A stretch of 16,466 nucleotides of DNA, taken from positions 1 through 16,466 of the forward strand of contig CAXIUT010000304.1 in the NCBI GenBank assembly GCA_964035545.1, in the 5' to 3' direction. Source of the stretch: Bugula neritina (Eukaryota; Animalia; Bryozoa). The translations under genes were made by a program, and so were the position numbers. The notes under the pieces were generated by a model that ran no database searches, was not told the DNA's origin, and was given only the letters and a program-made list of their open reading frames with translations. Below, piece after piece: positions 1-16,466 of this stretch; within the stretch, counting starts at the first letter, position 1, and each line of letters begins with the position of its first letter.

Positions 1-810
1 AAAGTTCTTCTTATCTGAGTTTATCAACAACTCTTCTTCCAAGAAATCCTTTAATGGTCTTTTGTATCATGATCACTTGTTATTTTTTGAGGTTTTCAGT
101 ATCATCAGGATCAAAGTTTTATTGTCCTTGAGCTTCTTTTTTCTTGGCCAATTTTTTGATCTATCTTTTTTGATAATAAGCAGCTTTTAATGCTCTAACA
201 ATTCCCTGTCTTCCTCTTTCTATTTTTTGAATAATTCTAATTGCAGTTTCCATATTAGTATCGAGAGCTGATCTTTCTTAAATAACTTCTTCTTCTGGTA
301 AGTTAGTCTATTTGAGGTCAATAAGAAACTTTTCCACAATTTGATTTCTTTTAGATTTATCATCATTGCGGTCATGAACGAAGTATCTTGGAATGTGCAT
401 CTATATTTCTGAAGGTCTCATTCTCATATCAAGTAGAAATTCATCCAAGTTGACATATTAACTACGAACTGAGTTGGTAAGAGTATTGTATCTTATCAGA
501 TTTAATTTAAGTTACACAACTCTGAGCATAGTTGATTCCAACATATCTTTGAGTAACATTCTTTTCTGAGGGTGAACCATTTGGTCGTAAACATCTTAGA
601 GAACCTTGTAGCAGTGAACATATTTAACGTAGAGGTGAGCGTAGAATCGGAACCATTCTTGATCATTTCTTTCGTAAGTTAACTGGATAGAAAAAGAAGT
701 ACTTGGTTCTTGGCAAGATTCTAGTCTAGAGGGTCAAACTACTAGTGAATGTTCTCAAGAAGCTAGTTTATCGCCTCTTTCCAGAGGTTATTATAGTAGG
801 AACTTGACAT
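1..810 (-). CDS. DRC11: Dynein regulatory complex subunit 11 / IQ and AAA domain protein (IQCA1-like), 5' part; continues beyond the window's left edge; 20-nt intron 683..702
   Basis: ATG at 810 gives MSSSYYNNLWKEA... After removing the intron GTACTTCTTTTTCTATCCAG it reads LYVKYVHCYKVL[TAA]DVYDQMVHPQKRMLLKDML, then IQKIERGRQG and the IQ motif IQKTIKGFLGRR...LR[TAA]EEL. These match the IQCA1/DRC11 N-terminal signatures. Confidence 0.9.
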
Positions 811-991
811 GAAGCTCCTTTGTCACTATAAAAAAACTATAACTTAAATAAAAATCAATGCATAAAACTCCAATATTCTATCATAAACATTAATAGTCCT
901 TACTCTATTAAGTATCATTCTTACATTCATTTGCAGTTTATAATTCTATCTGAGACTGATAGGTTAAGTGACTATAATATAATTTTAAGGA

Positions 992-1692
992 ATGGAACGG
1001 ATGCAGGGTCGTCCAGCTCGAAAAATAAAGCGTTATATGACTGATCCTTAGGAAATAGGTAATGATAATCGAATAAAATATAATCACTTAAATCTTCAGG
1101 AGTTAAAGCTACAAGTGAGTGCTCTGGATAGTATACATGAAATAAGCCTACCTCCTAAAACAAACAATGTCTTGAATACTCATAAGCCTCCATCTAACTT
1201 CATTCCTTTTCATTCTAAAATAAATAGCAAACGTAACCCTTTGAAACGTCTACCTGATTTGAATACGACTAATAGTACTGGTAACGGTTGCGATGTACCT
1301 AAAATAGCAATTGGTCCTCCGAATTTTAAAAGAAGTAATCCTTTATTTGTTGTCAATAGTCTATATGGTATATTCTTAATTATTTAGACATTCTCAAAGA
1401 AGATGTAGCCATTGATAAAAAATCATTAGACAAAAATAAAAAAATAATAGAATAAAAACAACACTTCCAGAGCAATTAGTTTAGTTAGTTTGAGGGAAAA
1501 AGTTTAAAAGTTCCAAGAGGACCTAAAATAATAGAGAGCTAACTGAGTCGTTTAACTCAGCAATCTAACTTTGCCAGAAGAAAGATATATTCATAGTAGA
1601 AATCAAGGCAGAAGACCCAGGAGCCTTAGTTGTTGACATTTTACAAGCCTCGGAATATGGGTTCTTCTGAGTCAAATTAATTTTTATGTTGA
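992..1692 (+). CDS. Hypothetical protein (~226 aa), probable 20-nt intron 1368..1387
   Basis: ATG 992 is in frame with the track ORF at 1115. GTATATTCTTAATTATTTAG fits the 20-nt intron pattern, and the spliced frame runs to TGA 1690-1692. The unspliced frame would stop near 1545. No recognisable domain. Confidence 0.6.
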
Positions 1693-1714
1693 ATTTTTAT
1701 TTTTAAAGTCTAGA

Positions 1715-2348
1715 TCAAACATTAAATAGATAAAGATCAATATCCATAGAATGACAGAAATGTTATTCTTACATTTTCATAGTTTTTTCAACATTTTAGC
1801 ATTCAATGCACTTACAAGCTGGTCCGCATCTTTTGCCTGCGCTTATGCATTCACAATATTTCTTTAAGCAGTGACTTTTAGGACATTTGCATTTTATTAC
1901 TTCTTATTTGTTTCTGCTGAGGAATAATTGCTATTTATTTCCACAGTTGATGCATTAGCATTCTTCTGTACAAGCTAGACCCATTTTAAAACACTAGCAG
2001 TAATTTTTTAGACATCGAGTTTTGGCACAAAAACACCGGCGGATCAAACCTTCGCTCTCATTGCAGGTCGAAGTTGATGTATTCGATGTTTTTAGTTCTG
2101 TTGTTTATGTTGTTTCAATCGTTTCTGATTATTGTTGAGAGGGAGTAGTTGGTTCGTAGTCATAGTTGAGTGATGATTTTTTCGAAGTTGTAGGTTCTGC
2201 TACTAGTTGTTCGTAGAGATCTTGGTCTTATTCATTCATGCCGTCTAGAAGGATCATAATCTGTTATTCTTGCTACATAGGCTCGTTTTATTCGTTCTAC
2301 ATAACCTTTATCGAAAAAATATTATACAAAGTAAAGGGAGTTAACCAT
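1715..2348 (-). CDS. Tesmin/TSO1-like CXC (CRC) domain protein, two CXC repeats
   Basis: Reads CFCAKTRCLKNYC[TAG]CFKMGLACTEEC[TAA]CINCGN and CKCPKSHCLKKYCECISAGKRCGPACKCIEC[TAA]N, with TGA at 1717-1715. The start is either ATG 2302, or ATG 2348 with a 22-nt intron 2306..2327. Confidence 0.88.
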
Positions 2349-2649
2349 TTAATTTATAATTTTGATCTTAATTGTTCAAGTATATGTTCTAATAGAGTAG
2401 ATTTTTAGTTCATAGAAAGTTATTGGAAAGAAAGTAAATATTTTTCATAAAAAGTTCATCATAGAATTTTAATAATGATGTTTCATTGATAGATTTCGAA
2501 CTAGCTTTCAAATAAACTCATATTTAGTGGATATCTTAAACATTTCTAATTTATTTTTTAGATATTGAATGTCAGATTTATATTAATTTTTATTGATAAT
2601 AATCCTTATAGATTATGTTATTAAAACAATTATCAAAAATTATAAAATA

Positions 2650-4478
2650 TCATTGTTTATCTGTCAAATCACTAAAATAAGAATTTTAACTTTGTTATAT
2701 AGGTTATTATGGTTCGACCAATTAGACTTTTTTCATCTATGTCATTGAATCAAATTATAAAAAATCTAATAGTTTGATGCAATGGTCTATCTAAAAGAAA
2801 AAGTACTTATAGATTATATCTTAAGAAGAGCTTTCATGTAGATAGCTAGTCTTACTTGTCTTGATTTTGGTGATGTTTTTGAACCAAAAGGTGAAAATTT
2901 TGGTGGTAAAGGGGGAATCTATTCAATATGTGGTTTTTTTATGTTAATGAACTTGCGAACGTGTCTATCTAGAGTAACAAATTAGCTAAATCTTTTTTTG
3001 AGAGAGATTCCTTTGTTAGTTTATCCGTAAGTGACAGATAAGAGATAGCAAGTATGGATTTTTCCATCTCCATCGAACACTACTTCATGTCCCATGACTT
3101 CAATAACCATATTTTTGAAGCCATATGCCAGGGATCAAAATAGTGATATACTTTATTTTAAGTTTGATGTCTAATCTTAGCCATGAAGCAAAAGATGGCC
3201 ATAGTGATTTTTTATTAACAACAAAATCAAAAAAAGAAAGAATATCTTGTTATGAAGGGATTTATGGAAGGATTTATATGGTTAATTTTTTTTATTACTT
3301 GAGTGTATTGTAGAACTGTAGGATTTCTATTCTGGTTTGATTGATAATTAGATTTAAAAAATCAACGTTCTCTAAGATTATTTTTCCTTTTTGCCTATAG
3401 ACTTTAAAAAAATGTTGTTTTTATTTTTATTATTCAGAAACAAGAGTTTATGTTCTTTTTATTCCTTTAAAAGAAGATTCATGGACAGTCAATTGATTTC
3501 TAAGGTTGGGAGGAACTTAGAGAAATTAAAGTAAGCAGGGAACTATAAACTATCCTGTTCTTGTTATTTCTAGAAGATATGTCTAATATGTTTTAAGTTT
3601 TTTATTAGCCGTATTTGATAAGATTACTATATTTATGATTTTGTTCTGGAAGAATGACTTCTTGTTTAAAGGAAATATTTTTCTCAATTCTAAGCTCATT
3701 TTGATAAAATCTTGATCTGATTTACTGATAATATTGCTTTTTTAGTCAACATAAACAGCTATTTTGAAGCGACAAGAAAGTCCTTCTTTGAGTTAATTGA
3801 CTTAGAAGTATTGATTGAATTAATATAAAGACGATTGGTGTGCCATTTTTTACCATCTATGAATGCTGTCTTCAATTGATTGATAGAAACACTATCATGA
3901 TTGAGTTTTGCTTTATTAAAGAGAGAAATACTTAAAAGATCTTCTGATCGTTTTTTTTTGTGGAAAAGAATGTCCAAAATGAGAACACAAAAATTAAGGA
4001 TTCCGATCACTAATGATAGGAATATAGTAAATTTCGGGTCATAGGCTAAGTCCTGACTTAAAGAAATATTTACTTAAATAACTATAACTTCAATAATAGC
4101 TACAATAGTACAATAGATCCAGAAAAGAATGTTGGGTAGAAACCTTTTTCCTATTCCTTTAGTAACAAGTTTAAGAACTATGTAGGACTGCATTGAATAG
4201 TTGATTAGGAAGAGAAGGGCAACAAGAGAAAAGTTGGGATGCTTATTGAGCCAGTATACAGATGAAGAGTATGAAAGGATGAGGTGAATTGTTTGTAGAG
4301 CCATTATGATGAGGATGATAAAGAATTTGATCCAGACTCTTCGGGGAAGTTAGATTTAAAGATTTTATCCTAGCTTATCAAGTTTCATGACTTTTCTGAT
4401 AAAGAAGATACTGAAGATGATGTTGAAGAAGATGTTGTAACCGAGCTGTGTGTACAAAAAAGTGAGAACGCTTGGCAT
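2650..4478 (-). CDS. Multi-pass membrane protein with C-terminal PX domain and a second, divergent PX-like domain; 20-nt intron 2787..2806; two unresolved frame switches (~3890-3780 and ~3135-3105)
   Basis: ATG 4478 leads into several hydrophobic helices (track ORFs 4074..4304 and the start of 3759..4010). PX-like 1: CRFKIAVYVD..IISKSDQDF..LELRKIFP...LLEFLE. PX 2: HTCYLLSVTY...KKRFS[TAA]FVTLD...IPPLPPKF...RQVRLAIYMKALL...LLDFLE. TGA at 2652-2650. Confidence 0.65.
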
Positions 4479-4539
4479 TATCCAACAATTATATTTCTAC
4501 CTTGATAAAACGAGTAAAATGAAATTATGTTTCGAATCA

Positions 4540-5860
4540 TCAATATTGAGATTTACCTTTTCTTTCTCCCAGAAGTCAGAGGCATATTCGTTTATTTTTT
4601 GATCATCAAGCAGTCTTTCTTACCTGTTTATCGAATCTATTCAAGCAGGCCTGGAGGACTTTTGGTATAACGGGTCACTTCTTCATGATAAACGTTCTTT
4701 GGGTCATCTTTGTAGTATTAATTGATGGTTTATTCAATTACACCTAGTGACTATGTAAGATTGACTCTAGATACGTCTTTATCGATTCCTAATTTTTTAA
4801 GTTCTGTTTGTGTGACTTATAAAAATATATCAACTTGATTGATTTGCTGGTTTAATTGATTTGATTAGACTGTTGAAGGAGAGATGCTTATTTTTTTTGA
4901 TGTTGATTAAGAAGTTAAAGATATTCTTGGTTATTGATACTTTGTGTTAATATTTATTTTTTGAGTTTGGATATTTCTTAATTGATATTTTATATATCTT
5001 TATTGAGTTTATTGCTGAATTAGTAGATGAATTGACTTTGTTCTTAGTGTTTTAGAAAAGAGGAGGTTATTTATTGGATATCATTTTATCCACTTTATTA
5101 TTTTATTTATTAAAAACTTTTATGAATTCCTTGCATTGTTTTTCTATATTGTTCTATTACTTTAGCTTTTTTATTTATTTTTAGATATTAGATTTCTTAA
5201 TCCTGTATCGTACTAGTGGAGATGTATCTGTTCCTTAACTCTTTTTATCAGCCTAACTTCTTCTTTTTAATATTTTATATCATTGTTATCTAATGATGCT
5301 TTTACTTAGTTTATATCATCCATCCATATTTTGGTTTATTCTTAATTTTTAGTTTTTAGGTTGATAATTTCTTATTTAGTTTGTTGTATGTTTTATTTTT
5401 GGTGATTGATTTAGATTTAAGAGTGAACAATCATTTGACTAAGATGTTCAATTTGAGATATTTTCTTTTTCTATACATCTGCTTGAATTAATTTCTTTTT
5501 TCTTAGTTCATTTATTTATGACTTTAGATCTTTATTTGATGAGATTACATGGTTAAATGAATTGATTGTTTGCTCTAATTGCTTTTATAATATGTGTGTT
5601 TTTGCTTTCATTTTGAATATCTAGGTTTTAAATTTACGACTTTTCAGAGAATCTAGCTCTTATACTTTTTTTGTGTATTATTTCATCATTTAGTTGCGAT
5701 TTTATTGTACTCTGAAAAATTTTCTTTATCCTTGCTACAATATACGAGTATAGTTATCGATTTCTCGTTCGAACATGATGCTGGGAGGTTAAGTTAGAAT
5801 TGAAGTATTAGCTGATTTATAAATTATTGATGACTCTTACAACCTTTTACCTTTGTACAT
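4540..5860 (-). CDS. Outer dynein arm docking complex DC2 / CCDC114-CCDC63-like coiled-coil protein; several frame switches, 3' end approximate
   Basis: ATG 5860. Segments LEKQLEQTINSFNHVISSNKDLKSEINELRK, SFEEIKEESGENDIQEITSSFLKHEEQSQFIYEFSNKLNKDIE and NLTESLGVIEETINE resemble the conserved blocks of ODA-DC2. A tandem TGA TGA at 4542-4537 is the likely end. Confidence 0.6.
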
Positions 5861-5918
5861 CACTTTCTATTATCGAATATATAATAGAAAATCTTATTAA
5901 TAATTAATATCACACATA

Positions 5919-7370
5919 TCATTCTATTCTTTGTAAAATAAAATATAAGGTTAACTCATCTTCACTCGATCCCATGAACTACCCTTCACATATCGCATCA
6001 GAAAAATAATACCAATCTTGTCCTCGTCTGGTGTAAGCAATATAATGACCTCATGAGAAGATCCACTGTGCTAGGTTATTGCGAATAATTAGTATACTAA
6101 AGGACCTTTGTTCAAACAGTGACCTTAAAGATATAGGTGATAGGGAGGACGAACAATTGCATTATTCTTAGAAAGGTTGTTATTAAATCTTTGAGACTGA
6201 TGACAAGGGTTTAAGGAGGATCTTTTAAGTAAAATATGCGTCTGCCTTTTGTTATCCACATTTTTAGCAACTATAGTAGTTTTTATGTGAAAGAGGTTAC
6301 GGTGAAAAGAAAGGGATCAAGAAAAGATTCTGTTTTTGGTTCAGGAGGATAGCTTAGGCCTTAAAGTTTAATTTATTATTTTGGGATATCTCCTTCAGGC
6401 AGTTTGAAGTTTTTATGTGATGTTTTTGATAGTTGTACAGGCAATTCTAAACAAAAGTCAAGACTCCAGCTAATTTGTAGACATTCCATACATTCTAATC
6501 TACTTGTAAGATAGAATCCAAAGAGTTGCTAGGTGGGAGTGATCTTTTAATGTTGTGTAAATTTGCAATTCATCCAGAATCTTTACCCATCGATTAGTCC
6601 ATTTACTAACACTGCTAGAAACTATTGTGCATCTTGTTGGTCAAAATGTTTGTAAGCTCCTTTTGTTTTGCAGACCCAGTTGAATAGAGTTTCGGAGTAT
6701 GACATTTCTCATTGTTTTTCAAATATTTGTTGAAAAGAAAAGTTATTTATCCGATACGTCCGAATTGTCTGTTTTTATCTATTTAAAAATTGGAACATCT
6801 AATATGTAATTCTTAGCATGCGTACAGACTTTGTAGAATGGAGTTAAAAAAACAAGTATTGCCTAGATTTTTCAAACCAAATACTTATAGCTTATGTTTC
6901 AGTTTTTTTTAATTATGTTATTATTCTTTCTTCAACATTGGATATTATGTCTTTTACATTTTGTAGGACTCCTTTATCATCTCTTTCTTCTCTTTTTTAA
7001 CTTTTTAAACAAACTTCTATCCCAATTTATCTGAATAGTTGACTATTTTATCATAAATTTCTTGAAGTTTTTACTTCTTATTCCCTTCCTCCATAAACTT
7101 TATACTATCTTATACCTTTACTTTACAATTGAAACAGTATATTTATTTCTATTCTATCTGAAAACACAGAGGATGCTTGGTTCCATAGCTATGCTGATAG
7201 GTGCAGAGATTGATTTCTGTATTACATCTGATTTATCCACAGCTGAGACACATACCTAGAACATTGCTCTAATGTTTTTTGTTGCCTGTGCATTGGCTGC
7301 CTGCTTTTGAGAAGTAGTTGGCTATTTTTTATGATTTAACTAGGAGTAGATGTTAACACTGTTTTGACAT
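5919..7370 (-). CDS. Ubiquitin-specific protease (peptidase C19) with N-terminal ZnF-UBP, USP16/45-like architecture; several frame switches in 3' half
   Basis: ATG 7370. ZnF-UBP: CEHL...CLSCGEIRC...H...HPL...YCFNC. Cys box: GLKNLGNTCFFNSILQSL. Also QQDAQ[TAG]FL, the zinc ribbon CMEC/CEKC, PPETLVISLK, His box HSGS..GHYIAY and terminal PYILFY. Confidence 0.85.
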
Positions 7371-7443
7371 TTATTATCAAGTATATACAAATAATTGAGT
7401 TTATGTTGTTTTATAGAGGCAAAATATCATAATTATAAGATTC
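7371..7443. promoter_or_regulatory. Putative bidirectional promoter region between USP and TERT
   Basis: Only 73 AT-rich bp separate the head-to-head ATGs at 7370 (-) and 7444 (+). Inferred from geometry, no motif identified. Confidence 0.5.
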
Positions 7444-10400
7444 ATGAAACTTGTCACCTTTATTTCTCACTAAGAAACTCTCAAGGATACTTTCGAAGAA
7501 GTCAAACCTAAATTCGAAACTCTTCTCTCACATATTCCTCAGAAGACACGCGAATAGCTCGGTCCAGCAGATCTTCATTTTTGTTAGAATTCATTTGTTT
7601 ATCCCAATGACGTGATATTTGATGTTAACTTACCTTAGATTCCTAAATCAATCGAAGGGTTTATGTAGGAGGTGATTCGGGAGTTGATTTATCGTAGAAA
7701 ACAGACATATGTGCAGTGTCTTGGGCAGGAGTATAAAGATTTTCATTTGATAATGAAATCTTTGAATTTCGGTAGGACTATCATTGAAACTAGTTCTACG
7801 TTCAAGACTTTGCTAGCGAAAATGAACTATAATTTATTTTACAAACTTTTGGTAAATTATATAGTCATTGTACCATATAAAGGATAGCATATTCAAGTTG
7901 CAGGAAAAGCTCTCAATGAAAAATACAATATGAAAGCTATAGGAGGGGCAGTTGTTAAAAGATTATCTGAACTACCAAATGAAGATGCATTAAGAAATAC
8001 CTAAAGCAGAGAAAATGTAGCATCAAGTAATTCTAATGCTCAACTACAAACACCTTCTGTCTCATCAGTGAATAATCCTCAGGTTAAATAATCTATTCCT
8101 AATCAAAAAAAGACAATGTAAATAGTGGAACCTTTGTCGAATCATAAGAAGATAGTAGAAACAGAGAGTTAGATCATCAATAAAAAGATAGTATAAACAG
8201 AAAATCAAATGAATTAGAAAGTAGTGGATGGAAATACAAGTTCTAACAGAACATCTCCTCCTCAGCCATCTCCATCATCTCAATCTAAGAGCATTCTAAA
8301 AACATATAGTTACAGTGCTGAATTAATAAACCGTATGCAGATATTTTACTGTTCTTCTATGAACAGGATGGCTGGTTTGTTTTGCAAGAGTACTTACGCT
8401 GATATTTAGATATATATTTCGATAGGAATCAGAGGAAGTCTAAATTCATTTATTAGATAGGCCATAGAACTACAACTATATTATAGGAACATTTTAAAAA
8501 GAAAATTAATATTCCATAGAAAGTTAGTGATAATTTAAAGGTGCTTCTGGTTACTTTATTCTAAAATACAAGATAATTCTTTTTTATAAGTTACAAAAAT
8601 GGAAAAGATACTTCCAAATTTACTAAATATCTGAGTCTGAATTGTCGTCTTCCCAAAGAATATCATGAGTTGAGATTGAGAGTTAAATTATATTTATAAA
8701 ATTAGTCAAGCAAGTAGAGTCGTACTGATGAGGCGAAGCAGATATTTAATGATCTATACAGTCATTATAGTGGATACTAGGGAGTAATTAACTTACTGAA
8801 ACAGGTGATAGTTAGTACAGTGCCTGAGAAGTTGTTGGGTAGAAATAATAAGAAGATATTTATGTAGATGATGGGAGGTTTTGTGACTATGAAACGTTTT
8901 TAAAATTATAAAATGGATGATTTCCTTGTAAGGATGAATGCTTTTGATTTGGAATGGGCTCTTTGTAAATATAATAGAAAATATCATAGAAAGATAGTCA
9001 TTAAAATGAGAAGATATCTATCTTTGGTCATTACTTTAATACTTAACTATCTGATAATTCCCGTTTTGAAGTTGAATTTCTATATAACAGAAAAGCATAA
9101 GGAAGCTAATAGAATATTTTATTATCGGAAACCTCTTTGGACTTTGATTAGTAAGATGGCTTTGGTAAAATTTAGTGAGGATAATTTGTAGCCGATTGCT
9201 GATGTGAGTGTATTGAAGATGAAAAAGAATATGACTAGTGCTATTCCTGAAGGCAAATTAAGAATATTACCTAAGAAAGGAACTTTTAGACCGATTATTA
9301 CATTTAATAGAAAGTTGTAGTTTATGTCTGATGTTAATCCTAATGCTAAATTAAAAGCCAATTTGAATCAAATTTTATCTGATACTCAGCTAGTTCTAAG
9401 AAATCTTAAACATATATTGGGTTAAAGTGTTGGATATTGCATATTTGACAATCGTCAAATAATGCATAAATATGATTCTTTTATTGAAAGATGGCGTTAG
9501 AATGGAAGTTACTAACTCAAATATTTTACTCTAGATATCAAGAAATGTTATGACTCGATTGATACTTCATTGTTATTAAAGATCATTGAAGATACAATCT
9601 ACATATAAGATCAATACTTTATTATGAAGTACAATCGATTGTATAGAAACAAAAAACCTCTCTATGGAAAAGGTCATTTTTCTTCTTATTTTAACTATAA
9701 AGAACGAGTGACTGCTGTAGGAATATCAAGCGATCCTATGTTAATTCGAGAAGAACATAAAATACCAGCTATTAATATATTTCCAGCAAAACAGAGATTG
9801 ATAACAAAAAAGAAGATCATTTAGTTGTTAAGAAATATTTGTGATGGATCCATTATTAATTATCGTAAAAACTTTTGGCTACAAAAGTTGGGGATTCCTC
9901 AAGGTCTCAATGTATCTGGTGTGTTGTGTTCTCTCTATTTCGCATATCTTTAGCATTAATATGTAAATGTCAAGTAAGGTCTTTTATTGAGGTTGACTGA
10001 TGACTATTTGTATATTGGTCCTTAGAGGGAAGCAGTTCAGGTGTTGGATAGTTTGTTGTTTTGTTCTTCTAAATTTGGATTTAAATTTAGCTAGGATAAA
10101 ATATCAAAGAATTTTGCACATTCTGTCCTGAAGGAAATGAGCGATAGTAAGGAGATTTATTGGATCGGTAAAAAGATCAATATATAAACTTTATAGGTTT
10201 TGCCTAACTTCTAAATGAACTAGAAGGTAGAGTATGCGATGAATGTTAATTTATCTAGAAAAAATCCTAAAAGTTTTTTGAAGAATAAGTTAAAATCTTT
10301 GTTAACTAATCATTTCTCTTCATATTTCAAGCCTAAGTATTATCCTTTAGATCATCAGACAACAGTGGTCCGTAGTTATGTGTAGATATCTTTATAAAAG

Positions 10401-10774
10401 TTTATGCCTTTTATAAATAAAGTAATAAAATAAATAAAAAGTCCAGAAAAAGTGTTAATAAGGGTATTTAAAAGTTGTTTTAGAGAATATCTTCTTTATT
10501 GCTGTATGTTAGCTGATAGAGAAGATGACATGTAGTACTATTACTATATTAATTTGTACATTTTTATTTATTTAGACAAATTTCATAATAAATTTTGGCT
10601 TTTTTTAATCGCAGACATCCTACTCAACCTCTTTTTTTGAGTATGAAAAAAATATATCGAGAAGAATGTAACAAAATTAAACAAGAATTGGCAAAAATAA
10701 AATCAAATGAAATAGAAATGAAAGTAGGAAATTAAAATGAACATTAAAGCTAAAATTAGAATAAAGACGATTGA
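7444..10774 (+). CDS. TERT: Telomerase reverse transcriptase (~1096 aa); 20-nt introns 8390..8409 and 10556..10575
   Basis: Continuous frame after removing two 20-nt introns. Motifs in order: TEN/GQ HIQVAG; CP2 INRMQIFYC; CP FTKYLSLNCRLP; QFP VPEKLLG...KRF[TAA]; T motif FYITEKHKEANRIFYYRKPLW (from 9078); motifs 1/2 GKLRILPKKGTFRPII; A FTLDIKKCYDSI (Asp 9534); B' QKLGIPQGLNVSGVLCSLYF; C LLRLTDDYLYI (DD 9999-10004); E WIGKKIN. TGA at 10772-10774. Confidence 0.97.
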
Positions 10775-10813
10775 ATGATACTAGAAATATAATTTGAATG
10801 AATAAGATATATA

Positions 10814-12813
10814 TCATCTTTCGAGTAGAAGTTACCACCATGATACTCTTTGATTGGTTGGTTTGCTCATTACTAATTATAAATATTTTTATATTCCTTT
10901 TCCATTTGGGTCAGCAAAAGGAGATCCGATAACTACATCATCAGGACTGATAAGTAAAAGTAACTAAAGACTTATCTTTTAAAGTTGTTACGATAGTTCT
11001 CCCATAAGCTGTTCTATCAAAGGGTGAGAAGTGATATCTAGGAATTAGTCTGTTCGATAGAGAGATAGCATCCATAGTTGAGTGATTATTTGAAGTAAGT
11101 TTTTGTTGGCTTTATTTTTGGCTTAAGCGATTCCTTATTTCATGACAGTGAGCATAGCAAGATCACCATAGATGATGGCTATTTATCTTCCTAGAAAGAC
11201 TTGTGAGTTATTCCAGATATCCATTAGAGGTAGTTTCTTTCCTTTCAGTTAAAGCATTCTCATTCCTGTTGCTTATATTTTTCTTATTAGTTTATATTGC
11301 ATAAATTCAATAGCTTTATCTATTGACAGTAGATTCTCTCGATTGATTTATATTAGATCTGATGGAGCCTATATATTGAATATTATACATCACTTAGAAA
11401 TTTAAGGAGAGAGTTTTTTGTTTATTTTCCCTTTTGCATTACTTTTTGAGCCTATTCCAAGACATATTTGGTGGTTTGTTGAATGAGGACATGATTATCT
11501 CCTTCCCATGTGAGGTTAACATCATTATCATTGTAGAGGGTACCTAGTTTGCTGTAGCTTGAGTATCCATGCCCGCCCATAGCAGTCCTACATTCTCTAA
11601 TGCAATCAGAAGTGAACCAACTGGTTCTGGCTTTCATTATTGAAGAAATTGCATGATGTTACTCAACCTATGAATCTTTTTCTTCAATGCTTTTTACAGC
11701 ATTTTTGTCACTTATTGAGACAAAATAGACATAAGATCGGTATTGTACGATATTAGTTGCTAGAAGAGGCATTAATCTTCTTTTCATCAAAGGATATGAT
11801 ATCAGTTTTCTTTATTAACTATCTTTTGGACCTTTGAATTGTCTTCTTTAATTGGCATATCTGATAGCTATGGTAAGTGCTTGTAAAGATATGGCTGAGC
11901 AGTTTCCAGCTATAGATATTCTTCCTCCTGATAGAGCTCCTAATTGTATTCCGAACCTTTAATTTTAATTGGTAAACTTAGTAGTAAATTATCCTTTTTA
12001 ATTGACTCCTGATAATCTATCTAAAAGATTATCTTTGGGTATTCTAACTTTATCGAAGAGCATAAAGCCATTGTCAACACCATTCATACCTCCTTTATGT
12101 CCACAATCTCCAGCTAGTACTCCAGGTAGTAAATTATATGTCTATCTATCTCTGATGGGAACGATAAAAGCATGAATTCCATATGATTTATTTTAGATTA
12201 TCAGTTGTGCCCAAATTAGACTCATAGTGGCTGTTTTGGCTGCTCCTCCTATCCAGAACTTCATGGCTTATTTAGTTGGAGAATTAATGATGAATTATTT
12301 AGTTGCGTGATCATAGTGGGCTTAAGTTTGCATTCCTTTGACGTTAGAGCCATGGTTTATTTATGTTAATCCAAAACAACCAATGTCTTTCAAACTAAAG
12401 GCACGAATAACTTTTTATTAATGTTTTTCTGTTCCTAAGGTATAAATAGCTCTGGCATAGAGATAGTTATGAACTCCTCCTAAAATTATGACATTCATAT
12501 CACTGAAAGCTAAACCATGACCATATGGAGTTACTTTTATATTGGCACTTGTGTTTAGTTTATGCACTTATGATAATTCAGGATTATTTAAAGTTGATAT
12601 AACTAGTTTATCGAAGGTTTTGCTTCGAATTTAATCAAGAGTGTAATCATTTAGGTGAAAATGATCTTGGAGAACTTTATTTTTATGGATTACTTACCAA
12701 GCCAATTCTCTATTTTTATAAAACTATCCAAAAAGAATAGTTTTTAGTTCATGGGCATCCAAAGATTGAGAAGAAGAGGTCAAAGCTGTTTGAAGTTGAA
12801 GTAGTCTGTTCAT
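10814..12813 (-). CDS. ACOX: Peroxisomal-type acyl-CoA oxidase (~659 aa); 20-nt intron 11369..11388
   Basis: ATG 12813. Motifs GCFGLT[TAA]INHGSNV, FIINSPT..AMKFWIGG, GIHAFIVPIRD, GDCGHKGGMNGVDNG, CRTAMGGHGYS and catalytic TWEGDNHVL. TGA at 10816-10814. Confidence 0.95.
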
Positions 12814-12867
12814 AGATTTAATATTTTATTAGGATTAATATGATGTCATATAAATAAACTTGATTTA

Positions 12868-13730
12868 TCACATGAAATGTCCATATTATAAGCTAGGTTT
12901 TAGAATATTTTAGTTCATTATTAATTCTTGTCGAATTTAGTTATTTCTTTTATTGACCAGAATATCATGATAGTTCATTCCATCAGATCTGACAAGTACG
13001 AGATTCATTTATTTCCATTCCCAGTAGAAAGATAAAACCCATAGTAGTCCAATAGTTACTGTATTCCATTCAACTATATTTACATATTTATCTGTTTTGC
13101 TTTCATATTCAAGATAAGAATAGCTTCTGGAAGATTCCTATAAAATAGAAACAATTATGATCATGGCTAAGCAGTACATCCAAAGAGCAACTAAGTAATA
13201 GGCTAGCAATTGCTTCCAAAATAGACTTGTTCGACTTATTGTTCTGGGATCATAATGATGGAGTTTTGTCAAAAAGATTGTCACCTAGATTGATAGATTC
13301 ATACTTCTATGACAGATAGAATCAGGATGAGAAAAAATATGACTGCACAAGGACTATGCAATGGTCCTGTACCTTTCTCATCGATAGTGCCTATAGTAAC
13401 CCCATAGAAACCGATTGAAACCAATGTTGTATAGAATAGAGTCTTTGATACACTTTTATCGAATTGTGAATCTTTGGATACTTTTTCAATCCATTTGAAA
13501 ATCATGAAGTAGATAAGAGCGAGGATGGAGGATGCTATAAGCATGAAATATCTGAATACTATGTCTTGAGGGTAATGGCAGGCTGTTTGAGTGATTGTTG
13601 CTGCTGGGAAGGGTTTTTCTTGGTGTTGTGAGACTGCTTTATGGTTGGAATAGAAAGGAGTGAGGATCATGATGGGGACATAGAAGAGAACTAAATATCC
13701 TACGTTGAGTTTTCCTTTATTTGAAGTCAT
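12868..13730 (-). CDS. Frag1/DRAM/Sfk1 (CWH43 N-terminal-like) six-helix membrane protein (~280 aa); 20-nt intron 13285..13304
   Basis: The track ORF's terminal TGA lies inside the intron GTATGAATCTATCAATCTAG, and the spliced frame continues to TGA 12870-12868. Motifs P.ATITQTACHYPQDIVFR, LHSPCAVIFF and IVEW are typical of this family. Confidence 0.72.
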
Positions 13731-14192
13731 AAATTGATAATCATAGTGATAAAGTAGAATGTAATCAATAAATATGTTAATAAATCAGATAACTTAGGCA
13801 TTCTTTTAGTTTTTTATGATTAGTTTGTTGAATTGGGGCTTTTTTATCAAATAAAACAGTATTCTGGGAGGTAATATGTTTTTGTCTACTTTTAGTAAGA
13901 TGGGAAAATACTTTTAATTCTGTCTAAATATATTGTAATTTTTATCAGAAGAATGAATTTCGTTCTAAATAATATTAAATACCGATATAAACCTCTTTTA
14001 TTTTCATTTTATTGAGACCCACTACATCAATAAAATAAATAAATTCAAAATGAAATAAGCATCAGCCTTTCTTATTGACGGTTTGAAATCTTGATAGTTA
14101 ATCTTATTTGAGTTTGGTTTATTTTTGAATTGAGGTGATTGATCTATTAATGCAACAGCAAAAACTGATTCAAATATCAATTAATCAAAGAG

Positions 14193-14612
14193 ATGCAAAA
14201 AGTGCTTCAATGTCTCTGCCTAACAGGCACTGCTTACAACTCAGCTTACTGCATTGATACTTGGCATGCATGTGAGGCCTGTGGCTTGGCCTACCTCTAT
14301 TGTGATGCTTGCTGCTGGACCTTATGTGCTCCTATCTGCATTGAGTGCAAGCTCGGAGATACTTCTGCTGCTTGTTCTAACTGCAGTAAGGGACTCAGGT
14401 ATTGCCTCTTTTCATGCGCTTTGGACTTCGTTGCTTGCGCTGATGGATGCATTAACTGTGTCAAGGTGATTGGAATTATCTGTGACTCTGGAATCAAGGG
14501 ATATTCTGATATGACAAAGAACGCCAAGTTTTGCCATGATAAAGTGAAGGACTGTTTGGGCTTGGAGACAGGAAACGAGCCAGACAAATCGATGGCAACC
14601 TATACCCCGTGA
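14193..14612 (+). CDS. Small cysteine-rich protein of unknown function (139 aa, 21 Cys)
   Basis: Intact ATG..TGA ORF, visibly more GC-rich than its AT-rich flanks, with no TAA/TAG codons and repeated CxxC/CxxxC spacing. Confidence 0.85.
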   Translation: MQKVLQCLCLTGTAYNSAYCIDTWHACEACGLAYLYCDACCWTLCAPICIECKLGDTSAACSNCSKGLRYCLFSCALDFVACADGCINCVKVIGIICDSGIKGYSDMTKNAKFCHDKVKDCLGLETGNEPDKSMATYTP

Positions 14613-14697
14613 TCCATCAATCTATTTGCAAATTCTTTCATTATTTGATAAATGTAACGTATCTAGTGATGAAGTAATCTAAATATAATTTCCATTT

Positions 14698-15381
14698 ATG
14701 ACATCAATTGGTAACTCACCTTCTATAGGGGACCTTTCTTTCAAACTGACAGAAAACATGATTATTTCTTAATCTCAACTGAAGCAGAACCACGTAAATG
14801 ATTCTTTGAACTACAGTTAGTCTAAAATATCTATTCAGGATCATGTTTAATAAAAATCAGACAAATTGTTACCTTTGGTTTAGTATTCAGGATTGTATAA
14901 AAACATTTCTTTTAAAACTATGTCTACTGGTATAACATAGAATTCTAAAATAAAGCAGGCATCTAAAGTATCATTGAGATCTAAAATAAGTTCTTCTAGA
15001 AAATGTTAATAAAGAACAGTTATTAACAAAATATTATCTAATCATTGTATTAATTTTACGAGAAGGGAGTTATAGAAGAAAAGTGAAAAGGAAATAGATG
15101 ATTCTTCTAATACTGTACTAATTAAAACAAAATAGAACAAACCTAGATGTTATTCTAACAGATAATTGCCTTCACTTAAAAAGAAGTAAAAGATAACTAA
15201 TATGGATTTATCACTAATGTGTATGAAGGTAAGGCCGATAACTCTTTAAAATAACTAATTGAGGTAAAAAAAGTATTTGAGAAAAATAACATAAAAAAGA
15301 AATAATGTTGTACATGCTCTTGAATAAGTTATCGAGTGTACTCCTCTTTGTAGTACTAAAAAAAATTATAAACGTCATTGA
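14698..15381 (+). CDS. Hypothetical Lys/Ser-rich protein (227 aa)
   Basis: ATG 14698 to TGA 15379-15381 with no internal TGA under TAR=Glu. It fills the gap between neighbouring genes. No recognisable domain. Confidence 0.6.
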
Positions 15382-15441
15382 TTATCATATTTGTCAATTA
15401 TTTTCTTTTATATATCTATATCTATCTATCATTTATCTCTA

Positions 15442-16296
15442 TCATTTATTTCTTATTGATTTTCTGCTTGAATGACTGGTTTATATTTTCTTTTCGATAC
15501 TTTTGTTTGTTTTGTTGACGCCTATTTTGAATCCTAGAGCTTTTGAGTATTTTTTCAATAGTTATTTTTTTATTGTTTATGCTGTTGTCACTATTCTATC
15601 TCTTTATTTTTATAATCTTTCATTTCTTCTATCAAAAACACTCAAACTGAATAATATCTATCTAACAAGTTTTCCTTTGCTTCTGTTTTATGGAAAGATT
15701 AGTTTTGTGTGTTCTAAAAGGATAGTTTATAGTTATTTTTATCTTTAAATTGATTTTCTTTTTTAGTTATTCTTTTTTATATTTTAGTTTATTGCTTGAT
15801 AGATTGCTTTATACTTTTTCTTCCAAATTTATATCTTATTTAGTTATCCATAGAGCATGTTGATGGTACTTTCCATGAGTCCTGATCGTCGATTATCAAG
15901 TTATATTTTTTACATATTAAGGATGAATTTGTGAAGCAGCCACTGTGTTTCTAAGACATTGGCTGTTTAGAAGTATAATCCTAGAGTTTAGTTGCAGTAG
16001 TCGCAATGTGCAAGTTGTAGATGAAGATAGAGGAAGGGTTCTTAGGTGTTAAATATTTAGTTTTAGGGTTCAATAAGGAGTGAGTAGTCATCATAGTTGG
16101 CCATAGTTAGAAAATGGTTGCCAAATCTGTAATTGGAGATATCTATGTTGAGGTACTATTATGCACATTGAAGAGGAGCGATGACGAATCCACAGGTTTT
16201 GCATATGATTTGAGAGAATCCTTAGTAGCATAGTTCTAGGTGGTATAGTTTTGATGGGTGTTGCTTTCTTTTTTGTTTTAGAGTTTATTTTAACAT
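15442..16296 (-). CDS. Yippee/Mis18-like zinc-binding protein with C-terminal charged coiled coil (284 aa)
   Basis: ATG 16296 to TGA 15444-15442 is open under TAR=Glu. IICKTCG...AHCDYCNETLGLYFE...KFILNMEKI matches the paired CxxC plus LGxxY/KFI pattern of the Yippee-Mis18 fold. Confidence 0.7.
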
Positions 16297-16379
16297 TGAT
16301 TATAGCAAGAGATGGAACTAATATTAGTCATTGTAACATAATCAATATGAATTATACCTATATTTAGTCATAAAATTGT

Positions 16380-16466
16380 GGGGTTGGGGTTGGGGTTGGG
16401 GTTGGGGTTGGGGTTGGGGTTGGGGTTGGGGTTGGGGTTGGGGTTGGGGTTGGGGTTGGGGTTGGG
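16380..16466 (+). repeat. Telomere, (GGGGTT)n, about 14.5 perfect units
   Basis: Uninterrupted GGGGTT hexamers run to the end of the sequence with the G-rich strand 5'->3' outward. This is the Tetrahymena-type telomeric repeat. Confidence 0.98.

Follow-up and report, generated by a model that had tools for sequence, protein, structure and literature searches.

TAA and TAG very probably encode glutamate in the genes of a ciliate chromosome end carried in a Bugula neritina assembly

In the peritrich ciliates Vorticella, Opisthonecta, Carchesium polypinum and Campanella umbellaria, TAA and TAG encode glutamate (Glu) and TGA is the stop (NCBI table 30, the peritrich nuclear code; Sanchez-Silva 2003, cited in PMC4967479; PMC11687900; PMC10553269). 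In Oligohymenophorea sp. PL0344, TAG is likewise Glu and TGA the stop, but TAA is lysine (Lys), and the median intron is 57 base pairs (PMC10553269). In Tetrahymena, Paramecium and Oxytricha (table 6), both codons likewise have a sense meaning and only TGA stops translation, but the amino acid is glutamine (Gln). Here we analyse how TAA and TAG are read in the genes of a stretch of 16,466 nucleotides (nt) filed under the bryozoan Bugula neritina (contig CAXIUT010000304.1 of assembly GCA_964035545.1); the whole stretch is called the window below. Comparison of its codons with homologous positions indicates, with a probability of about 0.95, that in its nuclear genes TAA and TAG both encode Glu and TGA is the only stop, i.e. 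that table 30 applies.

This is a rare code, but it is already known and not new. As in table 30, the other codons tested in the window are standard, and there is no difference in the code itself. The window shares TAG as Glu, TGA as stop and an oligohymenophorean-type organism with PL0344, and differs from it in TAA (Glu instead of Lys) and in its introns, which are 20 nt long; from table 6 it differs in having Glu where Gln is found there. Judging from other ciliate stop reassignments, the two codons would be decoded by tRNAs derived from tRNA-Glu with UUA and CUA anticodons, and the release factor eRF1 would recognise UGA only. Such cognate suppressor tRNAs and a UGA-restricted eRF1 are presumably shared with the table 6 ciliates.

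TAA and TAG at homologous positions

The comparison with relatives drew on the following four genes.

7444..10640, plus strand: TERT, with ATG at 7444, a 20-nt intron at 8390-8409 and TGA at 10638-10640
10814..12837, minus strand: ACOX (acyl-CoA oxidase), with a 20-nt intron at 11369-11388 and TGA at 10814-10816; matches ACOX structures in the PDB
1715..2308, minus strand: Tesmin/TSO1-type CXC (TCR) gene with two CXC repeats, both matched by Pfam PF03638
14196..14609, plus strand: Cys-rich gene of 138 residues, ending with TGA; its orthologue in L007 is 68% identical

They were set against orthologous contigs from five uncultured relatives of this ciliate (L001, L002, L003, L006 and L007); these are metagenome or run contigs reached via fragments matched in protein searches. 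ACOX comes from L001 and L002 (about 88-90% identical in the query piece), and L003 (the same organism as L004 and L005), L006 and L007 supply the TERT, CXC and Cys-rich genes; the TERT orthologues in these three are 53-60% identical and the CXC orthologue in L003 49%. TERT, ACOX and CXC were then compared codon by codon within exact coding bounds, a pair being one window codon set against one relative. What stands opposite each kind of window codon is given here.

TAA (51 positions, 100 pairs): Glu 43, aspartate (Asp) 12, Gln 9, TAG 8, Lys 7
TAG (32 positions, 81 pairs): Glu 36, Asp 8, Lys 6, TAG 6, Gln 5
Control GAA/GAG (154 pairs): Glu 78
Control CAA/CAG (103 pairs): Gln 57
Control AAA/AAG (420 pairs): Lys 244

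The profile of aligned residues at TAA and TAG is the same as that of the window's GAA/GAG codons, and unlike that of its Gln or Lys codons. Log-likelihoods were calculated for each candidate amino acid with substitution frequencies drawn from the same alignments, for all five relatives and for a set with one relative per gene (L003 and L002), which avoids repeat counting of a position.

Five relatives, TAA: Glu -184.5, Asp -235.3, Gln -273.1, Lys -308.3, tyrosine (Tyr) -441.1
Five relatives, TAG: Glu -146.6, Asp -186.5, Gln -218.1, Lys -237.5, Tyr -344.8
One relative per gene, TAA: Glu -101.2, Asp -123.1, Gln -143.6, Lys -155.2, Tyr -216.6
One relative per gene, TAG: Glu -56.2, Asp -79.5, Gln -83.7, Lys -90.3, Tyr -127.2

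With five relatives, the margin of Glu over Gln, Lys and Tyr exceeds 70 log-likelihood units for TAA and TAG alike. A model's earlier reading of the letters (the sequence-only reading) had proposed that both TAA and TAG encode Glu, and this holds for each codon tested apart, Glu being best for both. Where at least two relatives could be aligned, 14 TAA and 9 TAG positions have Glu in at least one relative and otherwise only Glu or TAA/TAG, and the all-Gln equivalent is found at 2 and 1 positions. TAA and TAG also interchange with GAA and GAG between the relatives. The relatives' own TAA and TAG codons align with Glu, TAA or TAG in the window, and the relatives therefore share the code.

Distant homologues of ACOX point the same way for TAA. 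The query was a stop-free ACOX piece of 68 residues and the database 1.84 billion representative proteins; the 37 full-length matches were put into one alignment with the ACOX model, in which every TAA and TAG was written as X. Four TAA codons fall on Glu columns, with Glu in 36/37 homologues at 12361 (a TE-x-x-GS motif), 36/36 at 11812, 31/37 at 11659 and 20/36 at 12295. Summed over 31 ACOX TAA columns, the profile log-odds are +11.0 for Glu, -2.7 for Lys and -15.9 for Gln, and the same test recovered all six control codons (GAA as Glu, CAA as Gln, AAA as Lys, GAT as Asp, TAT as Tyr and AAT as asparagine). The earlier claim that conserved Gln positions use CAA or CAG agrees with these data, as CAA columns score Gln and window Gln codons align with Gln in 57 of the 103 pairs mentioned above.

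The sequence-only reading had named seven in-frame codons as examples, and all of them are found in frame; five are on the minus strand (in ACOX, CXC and the PX-like, DRC11 and USP genes described below), the strand having been left unstated. Four were said to lie at Glu positions of the genes listed here, and they do. The TAA at ACOX 12361-63 (minus strand, GLT[TAA]INHGSNV) is the column with Glu in 36 of 37 homologues, and the TAG at CXC 1994-96 (minus strand, NYC[TAG]CF) occupies a Glu position (YCEC, column 17 of the Pfam TCR model), with GAA in the sister repeat and GAG in L003. In TERT, three relatives have GAA, TAG and TAA opposite the TAA at 8901-03 (MKRF[TAA]NYK), and TAA, GAG and GAA opposite the TAG at 9951-53 (AYL[TAG]H).

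The role of TGA as sole stop, also claimed earlier, was borne out by gene ends and by its absence inside genes. In-frame TGA occurs 0 times among the 2,491 sense codons of six gene models, including TERT (1058 sense codons, 18 TAA and 25 TAG) and ACOX (667 sense codons, 34 TAA and 5 TAG). ACOX ends in LLLER-TGA, and L001 and L002 have TGA at the aligned place. The CXC gene (TGA at 1715-1717) ends in LFNV-TGA and its L003 orthologue in FFNI-TGA at the same aligned place, and the Cys-rich gene ends in TYTP-TGA against TFTP-TGA in L007 at the same aligned residue. Neither TAA nor TAG terminates any of these three orthologue-anchored genes, which is a small sample.

About half of the Glu codons in the six models are former stops, 70 TAA and 37 TAG (107 together) against 84 GAA and 19 GAG (103 together), and TAA or TAG appears in frame about once per 23 codons. 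Reading them as Glu gives a Glu share of 8.4%, and leaving them out gives 4.1%. The relatives, with a guanine plus cytosine (GC) content of 37-51%, have more TAG (43) than TAA (25) among the aligned codons, and in the window (30% GC) the order is the reverse (TAA 70, TAG 37); which of the two reassigned codons is preferred for Glu follows base composition. No TAA or TAG is present in the Cys-rich gene (138 codons) or in the first exon of the neighbouring Frag1-family gene (13305-13784, minus strand, 161 codons), while the genes around them have one per about 23 codons. This may reflect codon choice linked to expression, or merely a low Glu content.

Weighing the readings of the code and of the organism

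Several points weigh against the assignment of table 30 and of the organism. The counts with several relatives are not independent of each other, and at a minority of positions (11123, 9957, 11452 and 11959) all relatives have Gln or Lys; such a minority is the expectation from ordinary substitution, and lone positions prove nothing in either direction. The five ACOX TAG columns (Lys 1.2, Glu 0.6) give no decision between Lys and Glu, and the call for TAG therefore leans on TERT, the CXC repeat and ACOX position 10964. The decoding machinery is not seen in the window, where ARAGORN found 0 tRNA genes and there is no eRF1 gene. Finally, the window alone cannot separate a peritrich from an independent origin of the code.

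That TAA and TAG would be read as Gln, the reading of Tetrahymena, Paramecium and the majority of ciliates that have reassigned stops, is in our view highly improbable. In Oligohymenophorea, the class to which the organism seems to belong, reassigned stops commonly encode Gln (PMC10553269); all relatives also have Gln at TAA 9957, TAA 11123 and TAG 11452. Nevertheless, Gln lies 89 log-likelihood units below Glu for TAA and 72 below for TAG, table 6 would leave TAA on three near-invariant Glu columns of ACOX, and Gln columns use CAA and CAG. There is as little room for the split code of PL0344, which has TAG as Glu in common with our reading and would find Lys for TAA at 11959, where both relatives have Lys and Lys is commonest among the distant homologues. 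For TAA as a whole, Lys is 124 log-likelihood units below Glu, and 13.7 log-odds units below in the test with distant homologues, in line with the exclusion of this code in the sequence-only reading. Further codes were rejected. Table 29 (Mesodinium, TAA and TAG as Tyr) gives -441.1 for TAA and -344.8 for TAG against -184.5 and -146.6 with Glu, and tables 27 and 28 (context-dependent, with no dedicated stop, every stop ambiguous and TGA also tryptophan) do not fit the lack of in-frame TGA in the 2,491 codons and of TAA or TAG at the anchored termini.

In-frame TAA and TAG could also be real stops in decayed or non-coding DNA, either pseudogenes or an assembly artefact, and here other sequencing runs are informative. 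Four public runs, which belong to three studies and carry three organism labels, contain DNA of the window from 5850 to 11800 at 95-99% identity in their contigs; because near-identical DNA recurs across studies, the ciliate is a recurrent associate or contaminant and not a one-off. What could speak for decay is the USP gene, which has seven 1-base indels against the other runs (5929, 5992, 6051, 6189, 6246, 6313 and 6689), seen against all four runs at three places and against three of the four at the remaining places. They break the frame, for example on both sides of the His box, and the cause is either an error of assembly at this place or decay of the copy that this strain has. Programmed frameshifting in USP was considered and rejected, since the other four runs have 1-base indels exactly at the frame changes. 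The indels are restricted to 5929-6689, however, and the next 5 kilobases have none except one at 10566 in a single run. Frames without TGA run through 1058 codons in TERT and 667 in ACOX, and the orthologues are conserved as protein. Among 26 listed coding differences between TERT in the window and in the other runs, 22 are synonymous, 3 change an amino acid and 1 is TAA to GAA (at 8574, in three other runs), which is synonymous when TAA is Glu. Decay is thus rejected for TERT, ACOX, CXC and the Cys-rich gene, and as an explanation of the in-frame codons it has very little probability.

As for the organism, the right end of the window is informative.

16379..16466, plus strand: telomere, 14.7 perfect copies of GGGGTT

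These terminal repeats mark the window as one end, capped by a telomere, of a ciliate's somatic (macronuclear) chromosome. Three introns were found in it (8390-8409, plus strand; 11369-11388 and 13285-13304, minus strand), and they explain three frame changes in its genes. Each is exactly 20 nt long, begins with GTA, ends with TAG and has A as base 15; the intron of the Frag1-family gene (13285-13304) reads GTATGAATCTATCAATCTAG. At the same positions, ACOX of L001, L002 and a further contig (L008) and TERT of L003, L006 and L007 have orthologous introns that are also exactly 20 nt long, and across these six related contigs the intron sequences have diverged and the length has stayed constant. 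Narrow intron length distributions have been reported from three sequenced peritrichs, and the uniform 20-nt introns fit them (PMC13685798).

The most likely candidate is a peritrich, or else a very close ally of the peritrichs within Oligohymenophorea, that was carried in the assembly of another organism. The sequence-only reading had pointed out that TAA and TAG as Glu is the known peritrich code, and this is consistent with the literature (PMC11687900, PMC10553269). It is unlikely, in our judgement, that the code is right and the organism stands outside Peritrichia as a second origin or an unsampled sister lineage. Stops have been reassigned many times in ciliates (PMC11687900, PMC10553269), the relatives are all metagenome or run contigs, and the window has no rRNA gene or other placing feature, an Rfam scan of it having given 0 matches. 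On the other hand, a single origin of TAA and TAG as Glu, in Peritrichia, has been reported (PMC10553269), and the G4T2 telomere is of oligohymenophorean type, as are the pieces of TERT and DRC11, which among solved structures match Tetrahymena proteins best. The uniform introns fit the narrow length distributions reported for peritrichs (PMC13685798), and one relative (L002) comes from a marine biofilm metagenome, according to paper searches on run accessions, which is a typical habitat of sessile peritrichs. If the organism were nevertheless outside Peritrichia, it would belong to a diverse lineage, with five relatives at 37-51% GC sharing the code and the fixed 20-nt introns.

The main importance of table 30 in this window lies in annotation. 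The standard code breaks the genes here into fragments, and table 6 puts Gln in place of Glu. In public assemblies, ACOX and TERT of the relatives are present as gene-caller pieces of 80-460 residues, and table 30 together with 20-nt introns gives clean models for TERT, ACOX and other genes. What the window adds is an AT-rich genome with half of its Glu codons being former stops, and five related environmental lineages with the same code.

Other genes and layout of the window

The window is AT-rich (about 30% GC, range 25-35%) and its genes are tightly spaced. From left to right they are DRC11/IQCA1-like, CXC/TCR, PX-like, membrane protein and coiled-coil genes and USP (all on the minus strand), TERT (plus), ACOX and the Frag1/DRAM-family gene (both minus) and the small Cys-rich gene (plus). 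Genes in addition to those listed above are the following.

2..733, minus strand: DRC11/IQCA1-like, the 3' part of the gene region in the window and the N-terminal part of the protein; the gene runs off the left end
2745..3500, minus strand: PX-like gene, presumably so from family motifs, with TAA at 2982-84 in RFS[TAA]F and an IPPLPPK motif after it
5900..7300, minus strand: USP/UCH deubiquitinase, Pfam UCH matching the Cys box (E 3e-7) and the His box
12868..13784, minus strand: Frag1/DRAM/Sfk1-family membrane protein, Pfam PF10277, with a 20-nt intron at 13285-13304

The family searches were run with stop-free translated pieces of the genes. The labels ACOX, TERT, UCH/USP, TCR/CXC and DRC11 given in the sequence-only reading are backed by Pfam and/or solved-structure matches. 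For TERT these are a Pfam Telomerase_RBD match and the piece 9825-9950, which matches Tetrahymena TERT (6d6v). The DRC11 part has 7 TAA and 3 TAG in frame, and its pieces 599-733 and 515-595 match a Tetrahymena axonemal chain (8th8_L) and human DRC11 (8j07); the TAA named earlier at 596-98 (minus strand, KVL[TAA]DVYDQ) falls between the two flanking alignments, opposite residue 65 of 8th8_L. The two other named codons are the TAA at 2982-84 in the PX-like gene (minus strand, KKRFS[TAA]FVTL) and the TAG at 6622-24 in USP (minus strand, QQDAQ[TAG]FL). Both stand at positions that we take to be Glu in the family motifs, QQDAxEF in USP and RxxSEF/DF in PX.

Pfam gave no match for the short stop-free pieces of the PX-like gene, for the DRC11 pieces or for several other pieces of the window. 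Solved-structure searches with the stop-free pieces flanking the USP and CXC TAG codons returned chance matches or none, a word-index protein search with one USP piece and one DRC11 piece returned 0 candidates, and for a TERT piece the ESM Atlas yielded nothing usable.

The relatives keep part of the local gene order. In L003, a tRNA-Asp(GTC) gene (7579-7650) lies between CXC and TERT, and the corresponding place in the window is without a tRNA gene. The 3' end of TERT is convergent with ACOX in L001 (1-430, minus strand), as in the window. The CXC gene is directly upstream of TERT in L003 (7875-8324) and the Cys-rich gene follows TERT in L007 (4828-5214), and the intervening genes therefore differ among the relatives.

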